From Tubulanus polymorphus (taxonomy: Eukaryota; Animalia; Nemertea), in assembly GCF_964204645.1 (NCBI RefSeq), contig NC_134032.1, forward strand, positions 14,558,275 through 14,622,274: a stretch of DNA of 64,000 nucleotides, given 5' to 3'. A model generated the notes under the pieces. That model searched no databases, was not told the DNA's origin, and saw nothing but the letters and a program-made list of their open reading frames with translations. Position 1 is the first letter of the stretch. Every line of letters begins with the position of its first letter. The translations under genes were made by a program, and so were the position numbers. This document shows positions 7,806-48,600 of the stretch, piece after piece.

Positions 7806-9543
7806 TTATTTTGTTGCGCATACATATAGTTTCGTAAAGCCAATGGCCGGTCCGCCCCATTTTTTGGCAACAGTGTTCCATGTTTTGAGCGCTGTTTGCG
7901 GCTGTCCGGGCATCAACGGCCAAAAACCGTTCAGATTCGCGCTCGTACAATTATTAAACCACCATCCACCGCCGTAATCCGAGGCGCAGTTCGATTCCGG
8001 AGACTGGTCGTTATCTCTGTCATACGTACTGAAATACATATTGTAAATCGACGTATTTTCACCCCCCGCGAACAACGCGTCGCCCCAATTCTTGAATCGT
8101 AAATCGCTCACGTCCAGCGCGGACTGGTTCAAGCTGATTCGATAGTTGTTCGATTCGTCCTCGACGAGTAGGTTATCGTAGAAAATTTTCTTCGAAATCG
8201 AGTGATTCGTTTTAGCATGCAGCTCGACGCATAGCGTGTAGGCGCGACCGTTCGTCACCAGTTTATGAAGTGTTTCTAATCCCAGCCACATGGAGTCGCC
8301 ACTAGTATTAAACCCGTCTTTGTATTCGGCCCAGGATTTGTTAAAGTTATCGGAATCGTTGAACGTTCGCTTGCTCAACATCGTGCAGCCCATACTGCGA
8401 ATGTAGCAGGTACAACGGACGAAAACGAGGCTGTCCGCAGCGCCACCTGGTCGTATGTATTGCCAATAGGAACCGTCAGATCGCACATGCGCATTGCAGT
8501 AATCCTCGCAGCCTAGAAAGAGATCGTTACGCATATATTAGGTTTGGTGGAGGATTCCACTGCGGGGTGCTTCGTTCGATCTTACCTTGGGCGAGTTTTT
8601 CACATCTCTGTCCCGTCCAACCTGGGGAACAGTTAATGCACAGTCGCTTCTTCGCAACGTATCGACCGCCATTCAAACAAAATCCAGGCTTGAAAAAAAT
8701 TACGAGATTTCAATATGGCAATCGGGCAGCTATATCACATTATCAGTTTTTATTGAAAATGGGCGAACGAACGAACGGGCTCTCAGAAACGATTTCTTCT
8801 TAGATTGAATATGAATACGGTAAGCATCTAAAATGGAAATCGAGGTTTGAGAAAAGTTACTAGATTATCAATATGGTAACCAGGCAGCCATAGTACATAG
8901 CCATAAGCATTACGTGAACTTTCACAATATTCTGTCTTAGATAAAGTACACGAATGCAAAAAGTCGTCCAACACTGAAATTCAGGCTTTAGAACTAATCG
9001 ATTTACAATATGGCAATCAGGCAGCTAAATCGCATTTATCCAATGGAACCAACGAGAGTGGAAATTTGTTCAAAGTTGCACGATGAGTTTTCTAAATATA
9101 AAAATGGAATATATGTAGTAAGTAATATGTAGTATATGGACTAAGATTTGAACCTTATCACCCCCCCCCCCTGTCCCGAAACCACCCTCACGCTCCGTTC
9201 ACAAACTCACCGGAGCTTCCTCGTAATATACAAACGCAGGAGCCGTAATTAGTTCACTACAGTTTTGATTATTCATCTGACGATTCCCTAGAATGCAAAC
9301 CGTTTCTCCGTAGCCAAACCCGGTACAAGTCGCCATTCTGCTACACTGACGAGCGCACTGAAATTCCGACGTAGCAGTCCGAGTTATCGTTACTGTCACG
9401 TCCGGTGCGTAGTCCGTACCGCATTTAGAATGTCGCGTGTAATGGTTGACGTATTGGTGCACGTTCTCGTGTCCGGTGCAGACGAAAATTAAACATTTCA
9501 GTAAAATTAGTTTCAGATTTGTTCCGAATATAAATTTCGCCAT
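7806..9543 (-). CDS. Secreted fibrinogen-related protein (signal peptide + PAN/apple + EGF + fibrinogen C-terminal domain), ~380 aa; exons 9543-9211, 8688-8586, 8512-7806
   Basis: FBG motifs FNKSWAEYKDGF, WLGLETLHKL, FSTYDRDND, GGGWWFNNC.SANLNG. EGF-like CLNGG...C.PGWTGQRCE. PAN-like QCARQCSRMATCTGF. GT-AG junctions keep frame (phases 0 and 1). Confidence 0.85.
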
Positions 9544-10612: not shown

Positions 10613-13600
10613 ATTTCAAACTGGTTGCGCTGTTAACGTGATCATAAACACGCTACATAACACAACCGCATTCATCACACCATTTTTTTGTAAAAAAAAC
10701 AATAAGCGGAACTATTTCTGAATTTATCGCGGTCTGAATTCAGGTTGATCCGCTTAAGAAGTGGGGTCTCAACATCTAAATCAGGGTGGCGTAGGCATGG
10801 TAACAATGTTCAAGAAGTTTCACAAAATGGAGAGGCTTTCCTCTCTATACAAAATTTGTCAATATCTAAATTTATTGCAATTGTTCTCATCACGTAAATC
10901 AATAATCAATAAGCTCTTATCCACACGTCACTCGAGGGTGGAAGTGGAACGCTGTTCGGTGTGTATCAGGATCAGACAAACTTTCTGTCGGAAATTCTCA
11001 TCGATGTCAACATCGGTTTCGTTAATGGATTTGTTTGCCGATCGATAAGTGCTACTTCCGGTTCTGAACAGCCATTTGTACGAGTGTGCCGGCCACGTGA
11101 TCACCAGTTTGAATTAACACGGTTCGCATTGTCTCATTATCAGTCGCAACAACGAATTCGGAAATAATGAATTATAATTCCTCGCTTGCCAGGGGATTGG
11201 TTGTTGAAACGAACAAGATCGCTTCGACAGTAGGGCAAGCGAGAGACCCCTGGGAAGCGAGGATTAACCACAGATTAGAACTCTGAGGCGCGGCCCATTT
11301 CCGTTTGTGAAGGGTTAACTCGAATTGAAATTAGTCTTCAACTCACAACTTTGGAACCTTGGACCACAGTTTTGATCCAGTTAACTCTCCATTAAAATCA
11401 GTTCATTTTCAGTAGCTCTGTACACACGGATGGAGTCTAGACATTCACATGAATAAATAATGAATTTTGCCGCTATACGTTTCGTGTTACATTGAAATCA
11501 AATACATATATTTGAATTATGTAGTATAGATAGATATATATTTTAAAAGTAGACCTACAAGCACTCGACTACACAAAAACAAAGCCCTCGTCCTAGAGAG
11601 AGAGGGGGCATGGGGAGGGGAAGAGGGGAAGAGAGTGGGGGAAGGAGAGATAGAGATAGAGCGGGTGAGAGGAAGGGAAGAGAGTGAGGGAAGGAGAGAG
11701 AGAAGAGGGGAGGATAGTGAGGGAAGGAGAGAGAGAGAGATGGGGAGAGAGAGATGGGGAGAGGAGGGGAAGAAAGAGAGTGAGGGAAGGAGAGGGAGAA
11801 GGGGAGAGGAGGGGAATGTTATTCGTTATAATCGATTCTCTCAACCAAATTTTAATTTCATTCAATGAAAAATTCCCTCTCCCCCCGGCGAACAGAACAA
11901 ATAAAATGCAAAATTCCCGGGTTTCGGGGCGCGAGAAATAAACAATCTACACTGGATACAAATTAACTAAATTACCGATGGAAATTGATGAAGTGAGCGC
12001 CTATAGCGCGCACGCGTGGATGATGGAATTCAAATTGTCAGCGTAGACGTCGCGAATACAAACACGGACGGCGCTGTGCGTTTCGCTCTGTTCCGCTCTG
12101 ACAGGTCGTTTGTGATCGGCTGCGGCTCAAAAACTATAGCGCGTGTTTTTGATGGGTTTATTTTTCAAGATTAAACTCCACTCATATCGCACCGCCGCCG
12201 CCGCTGCTGCTGCTGCTGCTGCTGATGTTGCTGTGTATCTATTGTTTACCACCTTCCGACACGATCCAATGAAAACACATCGATTTGAAATTTTTCAATT
12301 TATCGTTTTAAAGTGGTTTTGAAAATGCACCGTTCGGTAGCCAGAGAGAACGCGTAGTGCAGTGCGTACAGAGCGTGGTGCAATAATAACGAAACTAGCT
12401 GCTTGGTGGCCATTTTTGTTCCACCCGGTTAAATTTCCAAGCCCAAGAAGTCAAAGGAGCACCGAGCTTCAATATCAATAATGTTGCCAGAGGTTGCCAC
12501 GTTGAGTCTGGTCCAACTTTCAAAGTTCCACTGAGCATGTTCAGCTGGCGAGGAATATAACAGGTCGCCTGGTGGCCATTTTGATTCAAGTAAAAACCGT
12601 TTTCTAGAAATCGTTTTGCAAATTCTATTTCAGAATGAGTTACATCTTTATTTTGGGCACCGAATTAAACTTTATGCTCACTTGGTCCTGGGATATTATG
12701 AGAGTGAACTCAAGTTGGCTGCCTGGTGGCCATTTTTATATCGGTGATATCTATTTTTATATCGGAAACCGCGATCATCAACTAAAGACCGCGAGCATCA
12801 TAAAACTAAATCTCCATATTTTATTAAACTCATTTCTCTTGCTGACCCTTTCACTGTAAACCCAACCCTTTTACTGTGAAATAACCCCTTTCTGTAAACT
12901 TACCCCCTTTACTATTAACTTACCCGCTTACTGTTGGCGATTGGTGATGTTCGATTGAAAGACTCGTAAATGGTGGCGCCGGAATCACTGACACCTGACT
13001 CTTAAGTTTCGCGGACGTTGAGATTTATTCCCGATCAAACAAAACAAAATACTTCAAATCGTTCGAATCAAGCGAATATTTCAATTTCCAATCATTCAAC
13101 TGCGCAATAGGACAACTAGAAAATACGTTCGTTCACTATTTGAGTCCGTGTTTTAGCCGTAGAAAATACTAAATTCAGACAGAAAAAAAGAAAAGATTCC
13201 TTTAGTGTTAGTTTTTGTGATTCCTGAAGATTAATGCGATTATAGTGGAGATGTTGAAAATGAATCATTAAAACTAAAGGAAATCATTTCGGATTTTTTT
13301 CCTTTCAGAATGCGCGGCATTTTTGACTACTCACAATCATCTCAATCCTGTTCGTAGCTCCGATGAAGCGAATGGCTTTCTCGCGCGCGCATGGTGTGGA
13401 GGTATAGACGCCGCGTGGTGGTCGACAGAACTGCGCACTCAGCGCCGCTGGTTATACTCCCGAGCGGGCGGCGGCCGCGCGAGAAATGTCTACGTATTAA
13501 TCGGAATCCGATGAATTAATCCGCGAAAGCCAGTTAGAAAATTAGTTTCATACGTCAGAAAATGTACAGAACATTGTGATACATTGTTATAATTTTCTTT

Positions 13601-16600
13601 TCGTGTTTTACATAGATCCGTAAAGGAGATATGTTATCTGTGCGCATGCGTATATACACTGAACAGCTGCATCTTCTATCATTGTCCTCAGAACTTTTCA
13701 TTAAAAAGATTAACTCAGATGATCTTTAGGTTCATATATAGGGTGAATTACTGATTACAATTCGAAGAATTGAATCTGAGAAGAAATCTGGGAGTTGTTG
13801 TCTCATTGCACACTAGCGAACCTGGTGGATCTTCGCTTGCCACGAGTGGAATCATCGATTCCAACAGTCGAATGTAGAGTCCTAATTCCTGCAACATTAA
13901 AAAATCGAGTACTCTTATTTGATGGACGATTGTGCAATCAAGCGTGAAATAATTCATGCTGTATTGTTGAACACAGTGGAACCTCATTACAACGGAACTT
14001 CGCTGAGCCAGAGAAAGTATGTTCGTTATAACCGATAGTTCGTTATATTTAGTATGAAATTATAGTGAAATTCTGTTACTTGGGATGAAATTCTATATAT
14101 TTGTAATATCCGATGAATCGTTGTATCCGAGTTCGTTATAACGAGGTTCCACTATTTGCATATGTGACATGATAGTTAAGATTCTCTAAAATAATTTTTG
14201 GTTATCTTAGATATTATTTGCCGTGTGATGGTTTGAAATGGTTGTATCGTTCGACAACCTAGATGAGTTAACTAACTTTCTTGGTGAAGCAGATAAAATC
14301 GGAATCATTTTCTTTTTTGATCTGAGATTCCAGCTCGGTATCGCCTGCTGCCGATCGCCCGATCATTAATCTCTCGGCGCGTGTCGTCGTACGATCGAAA
14401 CTGACACGATTCGAAATTCTCGAGAAATTTGATTTATGCCCGTTCGTATTTTAATAATTGATTCTAATAAATGACCGTTTTAAAGACTTTCTCTCAGCGC
14501 AGTCGTTACAGTATTATAAATGACCCCATATATCCAGCTTCCTGAATGCGAGGTTTTAATGGAACTACGAGAGCGAACGAACGTTGTGAAACGCGATATT
14601 CTCTTTTTAATGCATTATCAACAGTTTCTGAGAATTAGACAAAATTCTGATTACATTTAGTTTAGATTACGTTTAGTTTCCCTTCAAAATGTCAGTGTAA
14701 AAAGATTTCTCATGCTTGGACCACTGGATAATGATAATCAATTCTGAATGATATATCCAGGTACGGTACCGGACACTTCATATTTAAGATTTGTCATTTT
14801 TTGGAAATGAGCTGCCCCTCAAAAAAGTTCGGCACGGACGAGTAAGCATGCAGATCCATCAGGTTCGAACCCCTGCCGGGGGAGGATGCCATAGTTTGTA
14901 AGGCCCAGCAGCGCAACCCGTTTGAAATCTTAACCGTCAAGTGCTGCCTCTGTACATATCGTAGACGGCGAATACGTGAATTATTTATTACTCGCATGCC
15001 GCAGTAGGAACATCGTACCGTCGAGTTAGTTCCCAGAATTACCGCTATTCTTATATATAGGGGCAGCACCTGACGGTCAATAGATGATAGCAATACTGCG
15101 GTATCTTTTTCGTGTAGCCTCTTCACATTGCTACGGAGCCCGGTGGATACTGGGCCCTTGGTTTATCTGTTCAGGTTCGAACCCGCTTATCGTCTATTCA
15201 ATAGAAGATTCGAGATAATGCCGCATCCGAAATTCTGACCGACTCGTCACAAAGAGTGGAAGAAATAGAAAATAAGCACACAAAATATTATCAATTTTCA
15301 ATTTGTACCTTTATATTTTGTATTTTGCCTAAAAATCTTATCGCATCAAGTACAACAACTGTTTACTGTACAATATATTAATAATTATACGAATAATGAT
15401 CATGTTTTATTTCATGTTGCCCGTTGAGGGTAGGAGGGAGGGTTGGATGAATAGAAAATTACAACCTCAGAGGACACGTTTATCATTCATCTACAGTTTT
15501 AATTCTCGCGTCGTTTCCGTGAATAAGTTACGACACTGAAATTTATAATAAATTCCGATTTTCGATTCTAAATTTCTCGCGTGGAAAAAAAGCTTGAAAA
15601 CGACAACGATTAAATAACAATAATACAACAGAGGAAAAAAAACATTTCATGAACACACTATAAAAATAAAACGAATTCGAGTATAATTTAATGTTAATTT
15701 GAAGAGAGGTGAAAATAAGGCGCAGCATGGTCAGCACGCTGTTGGTTGTATTTACAATCGATAAACGAGTTACAACTTGAATTTTGTAAACTGTTTTATG
15801 AATCTGGTTGAAGTTAGACTAGACAGTAACTGACATTCGTAAAGTAAGGCAGGTTATGAGTGAACGTATTCCGGTTAAGGAATAGCAAAACTCCAGGGTT
15901 GGGTTTCATAGATGTGCAAGCAAAATATTCCCTGGGAACATTTTGAAATTCGTCAGTTATAACCATGGTTTCTCATTGTTACTATGGTGGTTGCTTAACC
16001 AGATTTAGGAGTTATCCGTAGGGATAACTTCGATACGAGTCTATGAAACCGGGCCTAGATTACTGACTCTCAACTCAACCGATAGGTGGAGCGTACCAGA
16101 TGAGAATTCCGTAAACGGTGGAAACCAATCAAAACCTGCCAAAATAAGCTTACAATCACCTGTCCCGGTGAAGGCAAGATTTGCTATAGAACCTTTCTAA
16201 TTCAAAAGATTGAACAATACACATGTGAAAACTATTTAACATTTTAGTCATGGATCTAGTTCCTTAGTATCTCCGTTAAAATTCTCATCCTAAGGCAAAG
16301 ACATTCAAAGTGAACTAATTCAACATTCAGAACTCGAGAGTAAAGAACTTTGGAACCGAGTTCGAACGAATGGCGGCAGATGATTTCGACATTCTTCAAT
16401 TTCAAAGTAAAACAAATAAAACTAGAACCAGGCTTAAGCACCGTAGAATGATTTAACAGTATTTGCACACAACAGAATTCTTACTCTACTTTACGACGTA
16501 CAAGAAATACAAGTGAAATTAATAAACAGACTTTCGGTAAAACCTTTGAAAATCGAACTCAGGGGCAGGTCCAGAGCTCATATCGAGGGGTAGCACCCGA

Positions 16601-17329: not shown

Positions 17330-17710
17330 CTCGCGGAGACCGATACACTAGCACTGATCCCCACTGCTCGCGGAGACCGATACACTAGCACTGATCCCCA
17401 CTGCTCGCGGAGACCGATACACTTGCACTGATCCCCACTGTTAGCGGAGACCGATACACTAGCACTGATCCCCACTGCTCATGGAGACCGATACACTTGC
17501 ACTGATCCCCACTGCTCGCGGAGACCGATACACTTGCACTGATCCCCACTGCTCGCGGAGACCGATACACTAGCACTGATCCCCACTGCTCGCGGAGACA
17601 GATACACAAGCACAGATCCCCACTGCTCGCGGAGACCGATACACTAGCACTGATCCCCACTGCTCGCGGAGACCGATACACTAGCACTGATCCCCACTGC
17701 TCGCGGAGAC
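17330..17710. repeat. Minisatellite, 37-bp unit x ~10, in the probable CLK 3'UTR
   Basis: Unit CTCGCGGAGACCGATACACTAGCACTGATCCCCACTG. Confidence 0.95.
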
Positions 17711-18003
17711 TGGCACAGATTCTCAAACTACAGTTTGATATTACGCTCTGTTCATAATTCATCATTTAAAACTTGATGACGTTTATTAAGAGTTTGTTGT
17801 CGACGCGACGCAGCGCCGACCCCCGAAGAACCACTTGAACGAACCACAACTCGCCGTTTGAATTACCGAGCAAACGTTGTTCCGTCTCATCGACAATCGT
17901 TGTCACGACGACGACGATGGACGATTTCGCCTTTTAAGTACGTTTAGTTGTCGTAAATCTACCAGTAGATGGCGTCAGGTGGTATCATCGGGGCGGCCTC
18001 ATT

Positions 18004-21000
18004 TCATCTGCTCAGACTGTGCGATCGTTCGCGACTGGACGACGAGGTCGGGTTGCCGTTTTTCGCGACGAGGGCGCCCTCTAGACGTTGATGGCTCGGT
18101 AGCGGGTCGAAGAACGGATGTTGTAACGATTCGTCGAGGGAAAGCCTCTGAGATGGGTCGTATTCGAGCATCTTTTCGATCAGATCAAACAGATTACGAT
18201 GTTCTTTAGAATCGTTCATCATATAACGCTGAAAAACAAAACAGAAATTTCGTAAAAATTTATTTCGACGATTCGCGCAAAAGCTGATGAAATAATGTCA
18301 CATACAACGGGACCTCGTAATTTAAGTAATTCTCAACGTTTTGCATTTCCCCGAGAATTGTATTTTTCTAATTTTTCAATTTTCTTATTTCATGTAAAGT
18401 GCATAGATTACTATGGTAGAAAATGCGCTATATCAAGTAAATAGATTATCATTATTATTACTATAATTATCATCGTTACAATGTCTACAATCAGGGCACT
18501 TTCCGGCCATTTACAAATTCCTGAGATTTGCACAATTTTTTCATGTGATTACAGAAAATTCCCCGAGTAAATCAGAGAAGTTTCTTGGTTCAAAATGTTA
18601 CAATTCATTCGATTTTTATGCATCACGGTATTGAAAATATAAAGAAACACGTGGTCGATTGCATTATCCGATCTACCCGAGTTCTCCAGGTTTTTTGATA
18701 GAATTCCCTAAGTTTTCCCCGATTTGTTTCTAGATTTTTCTGATTCCCTGAGTTTTCTAGGTCAGTGGCGCTTCACTGGTGAGTGCCTGAGAAAAGCCCA
18801 TTTGTTATAACCGATAATTAGTTATATCCAGTACGAAGTAAACGTTAGTTGAAAATTCTAAGTTTGCTGTAACGAGGTTCCGCTGTATTTAGGTAATAAA
18901 ATGTTTAGTTGAACTATATTTCCCGAAATGATTGGCCCGACGGTCAGATGCTGTATCGAGGTTCCGCTGTATTTAGGTTATAAAATGTTTAGTTGAACTA
19001 TATTTCCCGAAATGATTGGCCCGACGGTCAGATGCTGTAATGAGGTTCCGCTGTATTTAGGTTATAAAATGTTTAGTTGAACTATATTTCCCGAATTGAT
19101 TGGCCCGACGGTCAGATTTAAACTCGGAAAACTGTAGCACTGAATCCTGGTTTTTAGTCATGATACGGAAAGCAATAAAACACGTCACGAAGCCAACCCC
19201 TTCACCCCCCACTTCCCCGACTGATATTTAACTCTAATGAATCTAACCAAATTCCACAAAACAGATGTAAAATAGATGAGAGCAAGGTTCCTACAATTCC
19301 CGGTATCCAGAATTCAAGGACTTTTCAAGGAATTTTCAAGGAGTAATTTTCAATATTCAAGGATGTTTACGCGGTCATATATAAGGAAAAAAAGTCGAAC
19401 ATTCAAAAACAAAATCCATGTTTTTCTCAAATTTTGATCAGTTGTTGTGTGTGCCGTTTTGGTTTTAATGTTTAAATGTTTTAAATCTCAAAGTGAAACA
19501 ACTTTCACTCACAAGTCACACAGTGAAGAATAATAGAATACACTGTCTTCTGAAAAGGACCTTTTGAAAAATTTTAATAGGACTTTCCCAGAATTTAAGG
19601 AGTTTCAAGGAGTTTATGGATATTTCTCAAAATTGAAGGATTTTCAAGGACCTTGAAAAATATATTCAAAAATCAAGGAGTTTTCAAGGAGTTGTAGGGA
19701 CCCTGGAGAGCTACGATACCATAAACTTTATGTGGAAAATATATTACATGCAGCGTGCAATAGGAGATTGAAAGCTAAGCACATTTAAATATGTGATCCT
19801 CAAGTGTGGGGACGTGGGCCTCTGATAAATGCTCTTCTTACCTGTAGCGGTTTACACAGTTTTTTAACTACCGAAGCTTGGTTACTGTTGCGACTTATCA
19901 ACGTCATCGAATCCGGCTTGAAATAGCGTTTTCTTGAAACGATAAAAAAATTTCGAAAAAATGTCGAAGGTAAGTCGGCGTACGCACTATTAACGGGACT
20001 TCATCGCCGGACTGCGCGTCTAAGTTATTCAATCGAAATCGGATGAAATCGAGCAAGATTTTGAAATTGAAATTTCTCTTTTTTTCAATCAGCGCCGAGA
20101 CTAGACGCTAGTTAATAGAAAATAACGCGCAGCCCGTATGAATAGTTGTCTGTCCGTCCATCTCGGTCAGGATTGAGAAGATCGAGGAAATAAAACAAAA
20201 ACATCAATAAAACTCAGGGTTCTTACAAGATCAGCGAATTAAAACTTAACCCAAATCCACTGACCAAAAATTTTCTGATTAAAATAAAAGATGTTCTCGA
20301 TGAGGGCTTTTTCTTAACCCTTTCAGTGCGTCTACACCGCAGTGCGGTGTATAAATCAGTGATGGATTTTGCTAGTACACCGCACTGCGGTGTATTGATG
20401 TAATTAGTAATTTGTAATTATCTCTATTGAAAAATGGCAGAAAGTGTCAAACATAGTGAAATACTAGTAACTAACGATACACCGCACTGCAGTGTAGACG
20501 CACTATAGTGGTATTCCCATTGTTCAACACACTAGGGTGGAATTTTTTAGAATTTTCAAATTTTCTCCAGCACTATAGGGTATTAATTAGTCAGCACTGA
20601 AAGGGTTAAAGGTTCCCTGAGCCACTCGGCAAGAACAACAAGACGCCAAAAAATTCATCGAATTCCCTCACTTTTCCGTGCGTGCAGTGCAGGGAAAAAT
20701 AAATCCAGAATTCAATGATATTTCCAATTCGTAAGAACCCCGAAAATTGGGCTTTCATGCTGCAAAAAATATAAATAAATGAAATAAAAGTCTATAGCTG
20801 CTACAGAAAAGCTTTTTAACACCTCGAAAATTGACTGAAGACACAGTGCCTGCTAAAACTAAAACAAATTTCAAAAAATATTAGAATATTTCATGAGAAA
20901 AAATCGAATAAATGAAAAAGCTCTTCGCCCGTCGATTATATATTTATATATATATATATATAAAAGCGTAATACGGGTTGTTGACACCAGGGGGCAGCAG

Positions 21001-24000
21001 GGTTAACGCACACGCACACATACAGAACATACCGTTACGATTTAGAGAACGAAAACAAAGCGTTGAAGAAAAAAAAAACAACTAAAATTTCATGCATTAT
21101 TTCAGTCCGAACGTAAAACCAGGTTTCAGTTTTCCGCAATTCATAAAACTGCGATAGCATCGTTTGTTACAACATGCGCGCTATCGTTACGAGACGTCCT
21201 TAAAATCCCGATCACCCTCAACCCCCGCCCTCCGAGCCACTGGGCTGCTGCTGCTGCTGCTGAACCGATTGACTTACGTAAAAGGGTTTACAGTTTTCGC
21301 GCACGTATCGACCGGCTGTGGTCGTAGCGTCCCAGTCTAGTCGGCCGTGCCAATAATAACCAGTTCTATAATATATTACAAACAGTATTACACAAAAACT
21401 TGATTCAACTGTATTACAGTAATACGTGATACGCAGGAGTGAGCGCGGCTTTAAACGGTAATACACACACATAGATAGCGAGCGTGGTTTTATAGAGACC
21501 TAGATCTATTCAATTCCACTGCATTAATGTGAGATCTTTTTCAAATTGTCAAACATCGTTTTAAGTCAATTTAAATTTGCTTAATTGCAACTGTTGAACC
21601 GGGCTCAGTTTTAATATCGTTATTCGAGGTTCAGTTGGTTCAGTTAAAACCTATCTATAAAACCGTGCCCCAGGGGGCGCTGCTAGTGCTGAAGGAGTGA
21701 TTAACTGACAGTACGCCTGTTATGCGGGTTGCGCGTTAGGAAGCCAGGACGGGACAGGGCGGGGCAAGCTGGGCCGGGGCAGGGCAGAGGTTCTGTTGTG
21801 TGGGTTGCCTGTTAAGGGAGCTGGACCGGGGTTCTGTTGTGTGGATGACGTGTTAGGGCCACGTTGGAGCGAGGGACATGCTAGGTTTTTATTTAGAGAT
21901 ACAAATGAAGCCTTCTTGTCGTCGACCTGTGAAGGAATAACATTCAAATTTTGTCGATTAGCAACAATATTGTTCTCTGATACAAAATTTCAGTTTCAAT
22001 CTCAGCCACCTGAACCACACGAATCGTAAACAGCCTGAAACATGAATTGTAATCAGCCTGAAACACAAATCATAATCAGCCTGAAACATGAATCGTAATC
22101 AGCCTGAAACATGAAACGTAATCAGCCTGAAACATGAAACGTAATCAGCCTGAAACATGAATCGTAATCAGCCTGAAACATGAATAGTAATCAGCAACCG
22201 TAATTAAGACTCGGGATGGACAGACAGACATTAAACTCATTTTCATTTACTATGATACGATATTTTGGTTTCAACAAATCAACAAATTAATTCACCAAAG
22301 ATTTCTCAATTTTAAAAATAACTTCTTTTTTTTGTCGAAATGCTTCTAATCTCGACGGGAAAACTTACTTGGATTTTTTTGCCATTCTGTAAGGAATCGA
22401 TCCTAATATTCGTTCCATCATTGCTAGGTGTTCTAAGTTATCGTGTGTCTGAAAATCAAAGAATATTCATTAACACGGTGGCGCCACTCACACTTTATCA
22501 GCTAAGAATCCAATCGATTAACGCAATGCAAGACATTGATGGAAACTGTCTGATTTTGCGCGATCTAACAATTTCAATAAATTCCCAGACCTCTGGGGCC
22601 GGTTCCATAGACAGGACTTAAGACCGGTCTAAGACAAACTTAGTTCTATAGCCAATCTAACAACTTAAGACAAGTCTTAAGGTTTAAGACCACTTTTGGT
22701 CTTAAGTCTCGACTATGGAACCAGCCCCTGGTGTTTTTTTCTTTAAAAAAATTCCCTGATTATTCCTAGACTTTTTTTTATAGCACAGAAAAATTCCCTG
22801 ACTTTTCTCTGATTCCCCCTGGTCAGTGACCGACCTTAATTAGTCACCGACGGTTGAGGTGAGGTACATGTATGAATCTGTGATACAACCTCGCTCACCG
22901 GACATTCTACACCGACTTATAGCATCACGAGACCCTGCCACATTCCTACCCTATTGGACCCAATTCCCTTTTGGAATAGTTTCAGTTGACAACGATGTAT
23001 TCGTGGTTGTGCAGAGGAGGGTAATTGCCACATACCTGGAATAGCGTGTAACCAGTGTATAATTCAAATATAATACAACCAATACTCCACGTATCACAAG
23101 GTTGACTCCAACCTAATTCTATAAAAGACAAACATACAAAAATAATGTTTACTTATATCAAAATTACTGGAACCAGGTTGATCAAGTATCTAACTGACGG
23201 TAGAAAATCCCTGCACACTAAGAATAAAAGAGTCTGAAATGTTTCCTTGAGCTAGTGTAGTTTATTCAACGTTTCGACTTTATCCTAATAGCCATCTTCA
23301 GGAATACTGTATTCCTTGAGCTAGTGTAGTTTATTCAACGTTTCGACTATATCCTAATAGTCATCTTCAGGAATACTGTATTCCTTGAGCTAGTGTAGTT
23401 TATTCAACGTTTCGACTATATCCTAATAGTCATCTTCAGGAATACTGTATTCCTTGAGCTAGTGTAGTTTATTCAACGTTTCGACTTTATCCTAATAGTC
23501 ATCTTCAGGAATACTGTATTCCTTGAGCTAGTGTAGTTTATTCAACGTTTCGACTATATCCTAATAGTCATCTTCAGGAATACTGTATTCCTTGAGCTAG
23601 TGTAGTTTATTCAACGTTTCGACTTTATCCTAATAGTCATCTTCAGGAATACTGTATTCCTTGAGCTAGTGTAGTTTATTCAACGTTTCAACTTTATCCT
23701 AATAGTCATCTTCAGGAATACTGTATTCCCTGACCTAGTGTAGTTTATTCAACGTTTCGACTTTATCCTAATAGTCATCTTCAGGAATACTGTATTCCTT
23801 GAGCTAGTGTAGTTTATTCAACGTTTCGACTTTATCCTAATAGTCATCTTCGGGAATACTGTATTCCTTGAGCTAGTGTAGTTTATTCAACGTTTCGACT
23901 TTATCCTAATAGTCATCTTCAGGAATACTGTATTCCTTGAGCTAGTGTAGTTTATTCAACGTTTCAACTTTATCCTAATAGTCATCTTCAGGAACACTGT

Positions 24001-27000
24001 ATTCCTTTTATTCAATTGATGCTGACATGAAGACATATATGTGTTATGTATGTCCAAAATCCAGAGAGAATGGCCATACCATAAAGAGAATGGCCGCACT
24101 GGACGTAAACAAACTCCTAAAACCTCAAAAGGGATAAAGACTGATTTTTCATCGAATGTTTTACGCGGCCACGGCTGATAACTACTGACCTAATATCACT
24201 TCAGGCGCTCTGTAGTGTCGTGTAGATACGATCGTGCTGTGATGTTCGTGGTCGAACGTCGCCGATCCGAAATCAATCAGTCGTATATCGGTATTCTTCA
24301 CAAAACGAACGTCTTTTTTCTACAGTGAGAAAATATCAACAACAGGCGTTTATGAAGTTTTAAAAAGATGACTTGTCAATTTTTTTTCTCGAAACTCTCG
24401 CACGACCGAAGTCACAAACCTTTTTACTGTTGTAAACCGTGTCATAATCGGAATCGACGAATAAGATATTTTCAGGTTTCAAATCCGTGTGGGTCAATTT
24501 CAGACGATGCAAAACTGTAGAAAAAAAAATAAATTCATAAATCGATGAGTCAAATATTTAAGCCTGATTCGTTACGAGTGCCGCCATCTATTGGCGTACG
24601 GATGACTTACATCTAACGCTATAACACAGTTGATACGCTATATGTCGAACTTGATGCAGTTTATACGGATAATAATTATTATCTTTCTGTAAACGAGAAA
24701 AAATATGAGAATATTAGTAAAAAAACATTCACAAGTTCATCGGCGGCTTCCAAAAAAATGCCAAAGTTTCAGGGTTAACTTGAATCTAGAATCAAAGCAG
24801 CGATAACGGGTTTTCTGCGTTGATGACCGTACAAAGTTTCATCGAAATCAGTCATTATCAGTTCAACCAAAACGGTATTTTTTGGTAGGAGCGCCACCTA
24901 GGGGTCAACACCTGTATTATACATTTGGTTCAAAGAGTACAAACCAGATTTGAGGACAACGGAGAAAACTATACGAACAATGCCACAATTCAGGGTTGAA
25001 TTGGAATAGGTTCATTTTGCATTCGTTTCTAAATCGTGGGTCATATTTAAAACTCTGCATTGACTGTGGGACTGGATTCTGTTTGCTTTCCAACGATAGC
25101 GTCAATGACCTATCTCATTTAAAGACTTTAAAGGACTCTTTTTTACTCCCAATTAATCGTATAAACTTACCAGAAAATCAAACACGCTTAAACCCAACAT
25201 GTCAAACGCGAGGCACATGTGACCGTGATAGTCAAACCAGTCCATCATATGTACACAGAGACTGCAGAAAAAAAAACAAGAAATATTTACAATCTAAAAT
25301 ACTGAAAACAATTGGAAATCAATTTGTAACTAAATTCTGCTGTTCTAAAAAGCGTTTAAAGTTTGCTCTGCTAAAATATCTGACAAAGAACGATTTCTCT
25401 ATTCAACTTTTCCCTCCTCTCCCTTCCCCTGGGGGGTGCCAACCTCTGACAACAGCTATCAATAACGAATAGAATCTTTCTTCAGTATAAACATTTCATA
25501 TAAAATATGAAAGAAAATGTTCGAATCAAGCGATCAACAGTGAGACCCTTCACGAATATCAAAACAAATCGAATCAGTATTTCTCATAATGAAATACCGA
25601 TATTGGCAGCTCTGTTTCTCCTCGTCGTCCCGAAACCTTTCGAATAAACTCACTTCTTTCCTTCGGGATCTTTATCTTGTAGTTTTTCCAGCACGTTGAT
25701 CTCGAGTTTCGCAGCTTCGCGATACTTCGTCACATTCTTTATCACCTTCAACGCGACATCCATTCCATTTCTGTTTAACGAAGAAAAAAAAACATGACAA
25801 CTGAAATATCTAAATGAACCTGTGCAGTGGCTGCGTGAAGGTCTCAAGGTATGATCTGCTGTACTACAGCTTGGCAACACTATGAATTTTCCATGTTACA
25901 GGGTTCTTTTTTTTTATAGATTAGGGATCGAAATTCCTTAAAATTATATATTTCCCCCGACACTTGGACAGATTCCTTGATAAGATATCATCATTGGCAG
26001 CTGTTTCTTATCAAGAGGTTCCTTGTGCCACTGGTCACCAGTCAGAACAACAAGACACCAAAAACACATATTCCCTGATAAGATTATAAGATATCCGCAG
26101 TGCGAACTGATTCTTCTGGTTTATCAAAGAATCATTGATCGTCTTCATATTCCAAACCTCTCATGAATAAATGGTTTCCCATAGTAAACAAGCAGATCAC
26201 ATGCTACTCATATCCAAGTCTCTGATTCGCCAGAGCTGGTCACCTGGTATGCAAATTACCCACATGGTCACTAGCCCTGGCCCCTGATTGGCCAGAGCTA
26301 GTCACATGATGTGCAAATTACCCCAAGGTCACTAACCCTAGCCCCTGATTGGTCAGTGCTGGTCACATGGTATGCAAATTACCAACATGGTCAATAAACC
26401 TAGACCCTGATTGGTCAGTGCTGGTCACCTGGTATGCAAATTACCCACATGGTCACTAACCCTGGCCCCTGATTGGCCAGAGCTGGTCACATGGTGTGCA
26501 AATTACCCCAAGGTCACTTACCCTAGCCCCTGATTGGTCAGTGCTGGTCACATGGTATGCAAATTACCCACATGGTCAATAAACCTAGACCCTGATTGGT
26601 CAGTGCTGGTCACTTGGTATGCAAATTACCTACATGGTCACTAACCCTGGCCCCTGATTGGCCAGAGCTGGTCACATGGTGTGCAAATGACCCCAAGGGA
26701 TTAACCCTAGCCCCTGATTGGTCAGTGCTGGTCACATGGTATGCAAATTAACCACATGGTCACTAACCATAGACCCTGATTGGTCAGTGCTGGTCACATG
26801 GTGTGCAAATTACCCACATGGTCACTAACCATAGACCCTGATTGGTCAGTGCTGGTCACATGGTATAAACAAATAGACCAACCTTGTAGCATGACCAAAT
26901 GTGTCAACATGAATTGACTTGGATTTTTATTGGATTGTTTTTTTTTGTAAAGTTAGATTGATTCTTGTTTGAATAAATTCTTAAAACTTAAAATTTATGG

Positions 27001-45600: not shown

Positions 45601-48600
45601 GAATCCTTACTTAGAAACTTAGAATACTTAAGAATCATTAAAACTGCACCGAAACAATCGGGAAGGTTCCATTACCCAGATCAATGAAGTGGAGATTTGT
45701 TGCAAAATGGCGATGCCCAGAGATTGAGTATTCAAGTATTCAGTAAAAACTGAGTAGCCTAAAAGTGGTGGCGATATTCAAACAAGCAAATTCTCATCCA
45801 CTACCGTGCCATGACAGTTTTTTTCTTGTTTTACAGATGGATACCGCGAAGGGATGCTGTTGGAAGTGCGACAAACCGCGGGATGTGAAAACTTGCAGCA
45901 GATGTAAAATTGCTAAATACTGCACAAATCAATGTCTACAAGCCGATGCTGCGAAACATAGGGTACAAAATACTATCTGTTATTTCTGTCATCAGTAGGC
46001 GATTACCAAAAACTCATCCCCCCCGACCTGCAACGTATAATCACCGATAATTTCAGCCCACATTTTTCTCTAAATGTTATAGATCGACTGTCAATATTTG
46101 GGAACCGACAAAAATCGACCGTGTGATTTCTGTCAGCAAGTGAAACCATCGCGGATGTGCAGTAGGTGTTTAGAAGTCGGTTACTGCTCAAAAGATTGTC
46201 AACGCAAAGACTGGCCGTCGCATAAACAAGGGTGCAACGAATTTAAACATAACATGCTTCGTGATTTCCGTTCAGGGTTCGTACTATTTGTGTGTCTTCC
46301 ATTTTCTATAACTTCCAAAGGGCCAAATTTCCATAAAGTGGAACCTCATTATAATGACCTCTGAAACTACGATTTATCAGATATACCAAACTTAAAATAT
46401 GGTCTAGTGTAAAAAGCTATTGGTTATTAAGATTTTCAACGACTTTCAGGTCCGGTGGGATTACTCAATATAGGCCTATCCAATTCTATGATTTACCGTG
46501 GTACTGGGGCAATCAGGCCGCAGTCGATTGGTTACAGTTGCCGAACAAAGAGGGCGCTGACTACGAACGCGACATCAACGTCTTGAGCGTTGGATGCGGT
46601 AACCTCGGTAACGTATTGTTGACGACGGCGAACGTACCAGACGCGTTCCGCAACAAAGTGAATTTCGTTCTGGTTGATTTTTGTCCGCACATAATGGCTA
46701 GAAATGTGCTGTTTCACTACATGATAACAGCTGCAGCAACGGAATACCAACAACGCGGTCCGGAACGCGGCGAGGACCAAACTGACAAGGCATGTCGTTT
46801 GATGTCACAGATCATGTATTCCCTGCGATTGTCTCCGGACGCGCGGAATTATTTGGTCGCGGCTCTGGAAACACTCGTCGAAATGAATGAAGAAAACGCT
46901 GATCATATTTTGGGAGGAAAGTTTGAAACATTAAAACAAATTTGGCAAAAATGGAAAGATTTGGCGTTTGACGACGCAGCTGTGGAGGCGATGAGATCAA
47001 CTAGAACTGACATGATGAGCACAGCAAATGAGCAAAACGGAATTGATCATTATCTGGCATCGATACCAAAACGTTACGTAAAATCGTGTAAACAGTGGTT
47101 CGAAAATGGACTGTTCGCTCGGACCCGAGACACGGACGAACGAGAAAAGATGAAATTCCCGAATCCAACCCTAACGATGATGAATCCATGGCTCAATGAA
47201 TCGGAAGATGAAGAATTATTGCGGCGAATTTTGTTGAATTACTACCAACAACGACCAAACTACCGGGACGAGATGTTGTACGTGGTTCACTTCAATTGCG
47301 CAGCGCCACACTGGTGGAAGTACGACGACGTACGACGACACCGCGACAACGATGACATCATCGACATGTTCGACGCGTATTTCAGACATGTTTTACGCCG
47401 AGCGATTGTTAACTATCGCCGTATCAACGTCACGTTCATCGTCGACGACTACAGACAAATCAATAAATACATCGGAGACCGAAAATTTGACCGAATCGCC
47501 ACGTCGAATGTGGCCGATTATTACAAAGGTTTGTACGAGCTCGTCGATGACATGGCGCCGCGTTTGAACCGCGAAAATAATCACTCAGTTTTGATGACAT
47601 CACTGATGAACTGGCCCTTCAGACCAGTAATCATAGCTGCCGAAGAAATTGCTAAAATGAAAGCTAGAATCAGCAAACTGTTCAAAGGGGTGACATTGAA
47701 ACTTGAAGACGATTTGGAATTTCAGGAAAGTAATATTGATCGGTGGCCGGCATTTTTGAATTACCTACGAGGCATGTTACAAGCTCATTTGAAATGTCGA
47801 AATGTCGTCAAACTGAATGATGTTTGGAAATGCCGAAACGGAGTGCGTCTGGCGAGGTTTGATTTATTCGAGAATTCAATCGTACCGTTCCAGCGTTCAC
47901 AAGTGAAATACGCAGTCAACCTACCACAGAAATACGAGAGAAATTTGGAATTCATTGTCGCCGATAGCGATGACGAAATGTAGTTCACAAAGGTCAACGA
48001 GCCTCATTTGACGAGTAATTCTCGATTGAGAACATTGATGAATAATACTTTATGATAAAAATAAGTAACTACCGTAAATAAGAATATCTGAAAGAGCTCT
48101 CACCAGTGTTCAGTGTTTTCAATAAGAAATTAATAAGCCAGGTCCCTTTGAAAAACAGGAGGGTCCCATAATATGTCACAGTCCCTGAAATGAAAGCTGG
48201 TTTGAAAAATCAAGGCGGGTCCTTTACAAACGACAGACAGGTCTGGGACCTGGCTCTTATTGAAAACACTGGTGTTGAGTTCGAATTGCTACAATAGATA
48301 TCCGCATTTTTTAATTTCATTTTTTTCAATGTACCCTCAACGCACTGAGTGCCAATTTACGATAAACTGAATCAATTAAGAAATTAAATCAAATCGATAG
48401 AATCGAATCTGTGTGAAACGTTTTTGTGGGGTTAAAATTGGAATTTAGGAGGGTTAAAACCTTCGAAATGCACCGATTATAGATCAACTTGTATATAGGC
48501 CTAGTTGTATTTAACAGATAAACTGTAGTTGAACTGAGAGTCCTGTGGTTTATATCCAACAACTGAGAAAGGATGTAAGGGGTTGACTTTATCTAGGGCT

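Follow-up and report, generated by a model that had tools for sequence, protein, structure and literature searches.

A tandem exon pair behind the LAMMER exon in the single CLK gene of the ribbon worm Tubulanus polymorphus

The stretch of DNA analysed here (the window) comprises 64,000 nt of the ribbon worm Tubulanus polymorphus (NC_134032.1 of assembly GCF_964204645.1, positions 14,558,275 to 14,622,274, forward strand), and all coordinates below are positions in this window unless a fetched locus is named. Its minus strand carries a CLK/LAMMER kinase gene, the sole CLK locus in the 268-Mb, 77-contig assembly. Between the exon for the LAMMER motif and the last coding exon of this gene lie two tandem exons, A and B, and exon B is spliced precisely into mRNA. 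We consider it probable that A and B represent an old tandem exon duplication in this single CLK gene, and that the B isoform is translated, with an altered surface or stability.

Several features identify the gene as a CLK. The exon at 22446–22369 encodes the 11-residue LAMMER motif (helix aG). The kinase core is represented by an open reading frame (ORF) at 24360–24512, in which a 13-residue stretch contains the catalytic-loop HTD, and by neighbouring exons with ALKIIKN and GWSQPCD.WS motifs; HTD in the catalytic loop is a feature described for CLKs (PMC2667211). The last coding exon is 45–67% identical to CLK C-termini elsewhere.

Splicing of exon B and the reading frame

The RNA evidence consists of contigs from four runs of one study (X1–X4) that contain the B region, compared with positions 17950–22500. 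In X4, a single 831-nt contig with a depth of 171 joins 22369 to 19932 and 19842 to 18228, and it shows zero mismatches over B. Both joints have CT..AC ends on the plus strand, that is, GT..AG on the strand of the gene, and this run has zero depth in the first 152-nt bin (18254–18405) of the intron that precedes the last exon. An earlier reading of the window from its letters alone (the original prediction) had named these two junctions as the ones to look for, and both are present in this one RNA-derived contig. A retrocopy was considered as the source of the contig and rejected, as the assembly contains a single CLK locus and a single copy of B.

Coverage in run X2 is ∼32-fold over the whole of 17950–22500, a pattern that resembles DNA. 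Each of X1 and X3 has a contig whose end coincides exactly with the acceptor of exon A (21365) and which runs through A into the following intron; use of exon A is thus seen only indirectly in these runs. The same two runs have a GCT insertion in a CAG run (∼21243–21260) that lies right after the exon A donor. Their last-exon contig (17950–18321) extends 93 nt past the acceptor into the intron, with a 2-nt deletion at 18254 and a G>A change at 18270; this extension may be a retained intron, an internal start or another allele.

Scored against a profile of the canonical exon, B reaches 8.7 bits, compared to a maximum of 4.4 bits for the controls, which were 2,640 open 91-nt windows across the gene span touching neither A nor B. 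Only 4 of the 2,640 are flanked by AG..GT. Read in frame, B still aligns to the canonical exon at A..V.K..CKPL. A search with B alone against PDB sequences gave no match at E ≤ 10. We rejected the idea that B is part of a repeat or transposon, as it is single copy in the assembly and the miniature inverted-repeat transposable element (MITE) in the A–B intron ends 380 nt away. A compensated frameshift was likewise rejected as the origin of the new middle of B: the other two frames score −2.1 bits or not at all, like the off-frames of control exons.

With regard to layout, the original prediction was accurate. It had described two tandem exons after the LAMMER exon, each running from phase 2 to phase 0, and the phases, lengths and translations are as it gave them; both exons have AG...GT flanks. 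It had also observed that B is missing from the program-made list of ORFs. Indeed, none of the listed ORFs carries the B peptide, because the 66-codon open frame of B has no upstream start codon.

Exons A (88 nt) and B (91 nt) both have lengths of 1 mod 3, and it follows that the frame is kept only when exactly one of the two is included. Inclusion of both puts B in a frame with a stop at its codon 17, as computed; when neither is included, the junction between the LAMMER exon and the last exon reads AAC GTT ATA TGA, as determined by eye, with a stop after three codons. The earlier claim that both or neither would break the frame is thereby confirmed. With exon B alone, the frame of the LAMMER exon carries on through B into the last exon, and B is accordingly not a poison exon of the kind that triggers nonsense-mediated decay. 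In quality, its splice sites match or exceed those of A. At a minimum, then, exclusivity is enforced by the frame.

Other bases for exclusivity were also considered. Steric or U2/U12 incompatibility was rejected, since all sites are GT–AG (U2-type) and the intron between the two exons spans 1,345 nt in the window and 85 nt in one of the other genomes described below (locus L013). A search for RNA pairing of the docking/selector type known from Dscam returned 27 inverted pairs in 4.1 kb, nothing beyond chance, and none placed as a docking/selector set. One 16-nt pair, 94% complementary, links the intron after B (19139–19154) to the intron after A (21115–21130) and could loop out B; it is within chance expectation, given 27 pairs in 4.1 kb. 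Choice between the exons is probably a matter of ordinary splice-site competition, combined with frame-based loss of the wrong products.

The pair in other animals

To place the pair in a wider context, genomes were searched exon by exon, and genomic loci with CLK last exons were fetched. A tandem pair between the LAMMER exon and the last exon is present in six other genomes, namely those of the mollusc Lottia gigantea and the brachiopod Lingula anatina and four further assemblies (L010, L013/14, L015/16 and L017/18). The original prediction had named a lack of conservation in relatives as a ground for refutation; the exon pair is conserved in these genomes. We refer to the two positions as copy 1 (c1, exon A in the window) and copy 2 (c2, exon B). 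In these six genomes c1 is 88 nt long and encodes ..[FY]FWHGRL[DE]WD...PLY; c2 is 91 nt long (94 nt in L010) and encodes K.[KR]YF...LDW[DN]...PL[KRGS]. All c1 and c2 exons have AG and GT flanks, a length of 1 mod 3, and the same order and phases as in the window. A homologous LAMMER exon lies just upstream of the exon or pair in L004 (a rotifer-like locus), L027 (Lingula) and L028 (Lottia). Exon A is 79% identical to c1 of Lottia, and exon B agrees in length, order and phase with c2 of L013, L015, L017, Lingula and Lottia. In L013 (438–522) and L014, the A- and B-type exons are only 85 nt apart, compared to 1.1–2.4 kb in the other genomes.

Some genomes have one exon at this place. A compact, bdelloid-rotifer-like genome close to Adineta vaga (L001–L006; likened on the basis of protein P0185) has a single 91-nt exon, which in L004 begins 60 nt after the LAMMER exon. 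Locus L023 groups with the leech Helobdella; c1 is present there at 391–478, and the 486 nt ahead of the last exon contain no c2. The second copy may have been lost in clitellate annelids. L007 and L021/22 could not serve as single-exon species: upstream of the exon, in the place expected for c1, <760 nt of contig remain.

Existing protein records draw on both copies. Copy c2 is the one included in the models for Lingula (P0130) and Lottia (P0267), whereas both CLK paralogue models of Helobdella robusta and several transcript-derived proteins use c1. Lottia c2 (L028, 20453–20543) has lost the Cys of CKPL (it reads ETKPLS), yet the annotated protein uses this exon. Proteins were searched by word index with the last exon, P0002 and the Lingula protein, and by a full representative search with the last exon. 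Among the database proteins fetched, no two had identical flanks and a different exon, as would be seen if both isoforms of one species were on record. The only Trp-less protein among the ∼350 CLK proteins fetched is a spider paralogue (P0149).

A tree built from the exon peptides groups all ten c1 exons, A among them, in a single clade (97/95). It leaves the c2 exons in an unresolved grade, alongside single exons from rotifers, arthropods, vertebrates, a sea anemone and a sea urchin. By its c1 exon, T. polymorphus belongs among lophotrochozoans. Mean identity between species is 72% for c1 and 42% for c2, and c2 is less conserved than c1 in every species pair. Exon B has the longest end branch in the tree (2.01 versus a median of 0.14) and is alone among the c2 exons seen in having lost the LDW Trp and AGRYV. 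Within T. polymorphus, A and B are only 17% identical, compared to 33–57% for c2 versus c1 in other species. The homology of A and B is therefore established transitively: in position, length and phase B corresponds to c2, c2 resembles c1 elsewhere, and one exon profile matches them all.

The single c1 clade, together with the 91-nt length common to c2 and the rotifer exon, argues for one duplication, which most likely took place in an early lophotrochozoan once rotifers had split off, with c2 close to the ancestral form. B is the orthologue of c2, the copy nearest the ancestral exon in length and end motifs, and A is the derived and now better conserved copy. The original prediction had proposed an exon duplication. 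Comparison bears out the duplication itself, as the tandem pair in six other genomes attests, but dates it to an ancient event reaching across lophotrochozoan phyla rather than to the lineage of this worm.

The encoded segment and competing explanations

For exon A, the match to human CLK2 has an E value of 1.5e-9, and 26 residues align to CLK1 411–436. In CLK1, access to the LAMMER helix aG is blocked by an insertion formed by residues 400–432 (Bullock et al. 2009, PMC2667211). This insertion includes a two-strand sheet (residues 409–418); Trp419, which is strictly conserved, packs on the central alanine of LAMMER; and helix aH (424–432) covers the groove used by SRPK1 for substrate docking (PMC2667211). 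By alignment, A and B supply CLK1 residues ∼409–437, a stretch that takes in the whole of aH as well as the Trp and part of the sheet. The segment had originally been assigned to the MAPK-like insertion of the CLK C-lobe that packs on the LAMMER helix, and this assignment holds. Exon A carries both the LDWD Trp (CLK1 W419) and the AGRYV of helix aH. Exon B contains no Trp at all and no AGRYV; it retains the KRYF and CKPL ends and an A..V.K.. remnant, and its middle is rewritten. Translation and alignment thus agree with the earlier statement that B keeps YF and CKPL and loses LDWD/AGRYV.

In the explanation we favour, c1 (88 nt, FWHGRL..WD...PLY) would have become the well-conserved version after the duplication, and c2 (91 nt) would have kept the ancestral length and ends and changed far more between species. 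In T. polymorphus, where it is spliced into an abundant mRNA, c2 would then have been rewritten in its middle, such that only the YF and V..K..CKPL positions survive. An animal with one CLK gene would thereby gain two versions of the aG/aH surface. Isoform B would be a translated kinase whose aG/aH surface, and hence partner binding or stability, is unlike that of isoform A. We regard this as somewhat more likely than B being a useless by-product, because B is open, has kept its length and ends, has strong splice sites and is represented by a contig of high depth.

A number of observations weigh against this explanation. B lacks a residue that Bullock et al. call strictly conserved (PMC2667211), which argues for a destabilised product, and no B-like Trp-less segment was found in the ∼350 CLK proteins fetched. 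The c2 exon is fast-evolving everywhere and is lost outright in L023, as expected of a dispensable exon. RNA support for B amounts to one contig from one run and one sample, and the run type (RNA) is not on record. Among the joints listed from the four runs, there is no A-only, A+B or skipped junction. Of the mutual exclusivity put forward in the original prediction, the RNA shows just one half, the B-only contig.

The main alternative is that B is a decaying second copy, still spliced and yielding a misfolded or inactive CLK. Its inclusion would then be noise, or would serve to lower the dose of active kinase, a form of unproductive splicing at the protein level. The loss of AGRYV along with the Trp that packs on the LAMMER helix (PMC2667211), the longest branch in the tree, the absence of c2 from L023 and the lower conservation of c2 relative to c1 in every species pair all fit such a scenario. 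Decay is harder to reconcile with a frame that remains open over 30 codons, a length of exactly 91 nt, strong splice sites, and the retention of the end motifs and the V..K..CKPL positions, and c2 survives in at least six other lineages. In addition, the B contig in X4 has about half the depth of the shared last-exon contig (362), which is high for noise, with the caveat that contig depths are not expression levels and give no A:B ratio. On balance we think decay unlikely, though it is the alternative to be taken most seriously.

Two further alternatives fare worse. One is that B is an unrelated piece of intron exonised by chance, its YF and CKPL ends being coincidental. The low identity of A and B, and the failure of B to match any CLK in PDB, would be as expected under chance exonisation. 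However, B agrees with the c2 of six other genomes in position, order, phase and its length of 91 nt; its profile score of 8.7 bits exceeds the 4.4-bit maximum of the control windows; and it is not a repeat. Chance exonisation is accordingly very improbable. We attach slightly less weight still to the notion that B is not used in vivo and that the X4 contig is an assembly chimera or derives from another organism or a retrocopy. There is only the single contig, its run type is unrecorded, and Logan contigs can simplify graphs. Against this, the contig matches B without a mismatch, and each of its two independent joints coincides exactly with AG/GT boundaries that had been predicted in advance. 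In X4, depth is zero in the first bin of the intron preceding the last exon, and the genome has only one CLK locus.

The favoured explanation, a translated isoform B from an old duplication, can be extended into a more specific proposal, which we consider quite unlikely as a whole. Here, a lophotrochozoan switch more than 500 million years old would swap the Trp/aH module over the LAMMER helix and the SRPK-type groove. In B of the ribbon worm this groove would be exposed or remodelled, with different and perhaps more restricted substrates or partners. The A/B choice might even be self-tuned by CLK activity, for example in response to temperature; it could depend on that activity because CLK phosphorylates the SR proteins that pick exons.

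The locus, related systems and significance

Positions of the exons, and of the pair in the two named genomes, are collected in Table 1. The MITE in the A–B intron has perfect 16-nt terminal repeats starting TTAACCC (piggyBac-like) and internal palindromes; word depth over 20230–20685 is 4e3–1.8e5 in all four runs, indicating that the element is very abundant in the genome. Some hundreds of bases beyond the CLK stop, a tandem repeat of ∼96 nt occupies 17385–17765; it contains ORFs with a repeated peptide and possibly belongs to the 3' untranslated region. Beside the CLK gene lie two long single-exon ORFs, one on the minus strand (7806–8534) for a fibrinogen-related domain protein and one on the plus strand (46538–47983) for a 481-aa DUF4470 protein, with an atlas score of 0.96 to DUF4470 clusters.

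Table 1. Coordinates of the CLK exons in the window and of the exon pair in two other genomes
Feature	Position	Strand	Details
LAMMER exon	22369–22446	minus	encodes a 16-residue stretch with the LAMMER motif; ends in phase 2 (two bases into codon); donor gtaagt; common to both isoforms
Exon A (copy 1, c1)	21278–21365	minus	88 nt; acceptor ag, donor gtaagt; enters phase 2, leaves phase 0
A–B intron	19933–21277	minus	1,345 nt; contains high-copy MITE at 20314–20609
Exon B (copy 2, c2)	19842–19932	minus	91 nt; long T-rich tract + ag, donor CAG/gtaaga; enters phase 2, leaves phase 0
Last coding exon	18004–18228	minus	RYMM…RERSHSLSR; stop 18006–18004; common to both isoforms
Lingula anatina (brachiopod) pair	L027: c1 13473–13560; c2 14594–14684
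Lottia gigantea (mollusc) pair	L028: c1 18416–18503; c2 20453–20543

We found no paper reporting an alternative exon pair of this type in any CLK. A 2025 survey of CLK evolution describes this region as a divergence hotspot with a conserved splice site and notes no alternative exon pair (PMC12795684). Tandem duplicated exon substitutions, such as FYN exon 7 (FynB/FynT), are homologous neighbours spliced singly; they are mostly ancient and fine-tune a region of the protein (PMC9741552). CLK has 0 occurrences in the main text of the human catalogue of such substitutions (PMC9741552). What sets the CLK pair apart from these cases in general is that it has been seen in no group but lophotrochozoans and that the evolutionary rates of its two copies are very unequal.

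The closest parallel in another kinase is provided by exons 6a/6b of JNK1/JNK2 (MAPK8/9), whose isoforms differ in substrate binding (PMC8699841). There too, one of two homologous alternative exons supplies a segment of the C-lobe of a CMGC kinase. The JNK exons differ in that they encode another C-lobe segment in another kinase family, and that CLK exon B lacks a conserved core Trp; to our knowledge, both JNK versions keep the fold-critical residues. Relative to the MAPK-like insertion with aH of human CLK1 and CLK3, exon A encodes the element almost unchanged, whereas in exon B it is replaced by sequence without Trp419 and the AGRYV start of aH.

Skipping of exon 4 in CLK1 shifts the frame and gives a truncated, kinase-less CLK1, an event thought to be under CLK's own control. 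The A/B pair would resemble it as a case of alternative splicing of a CLK gene that alters the amount of active kinase. It is unlike exon-4 skipping, which removes the kinase domain, in being an in-frame swap within the domain. A parallel at the level of genes is the spider paralogue mentioned above, a CLK2-like protein of Argiope bruennichi (P0149, XP_055926507.1) with a short post-LAMMER insert that, as in exon B, lacks the Trp. This paralogue differs from exon B in being a separate gene with a degenerate LAMMER motif (HFIMMHDVLG), and it is unrelated to B by descent. Relaxation of the Trp and of the LAMMER motif seems to go hand in hand in this protein.

Splice-site choice is under the control of CLKs, which have attracted study both as drug targets and as temperature sensors. 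As far as we know, the LAMMER helix of these kinases and the insert under which it is buried have been treated as invariant. Vertebrates have four CLK genes. Single CLK genes have been reported in molluscs and brachiopods (PMC12795684), and T. polymorphus likewise appears to have one. The exon pair points to overlooked CLK diversity, in which animals that appear to be single-CLK have kept two interchangeable versions of one buried module over hundreds of millions of years. Tandem exclusive exon pairs are already known, including in other kinases; what is new here is the CLK pair and the loss of the Trp in T. polymorphus. A practical consequence is that comparisons of CLK proteins across phyla mix non-orthologous exons, because the Lottia and Lingula models use c2 and those of Helobdella use c1. 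If isoform B is inactive, it would clearly exemplify how a conserved alternative exon can drift to a non-functional isoform that is still abundantly spliced. If it is active, the role assigned to Trp419 and helix aH would need revision.

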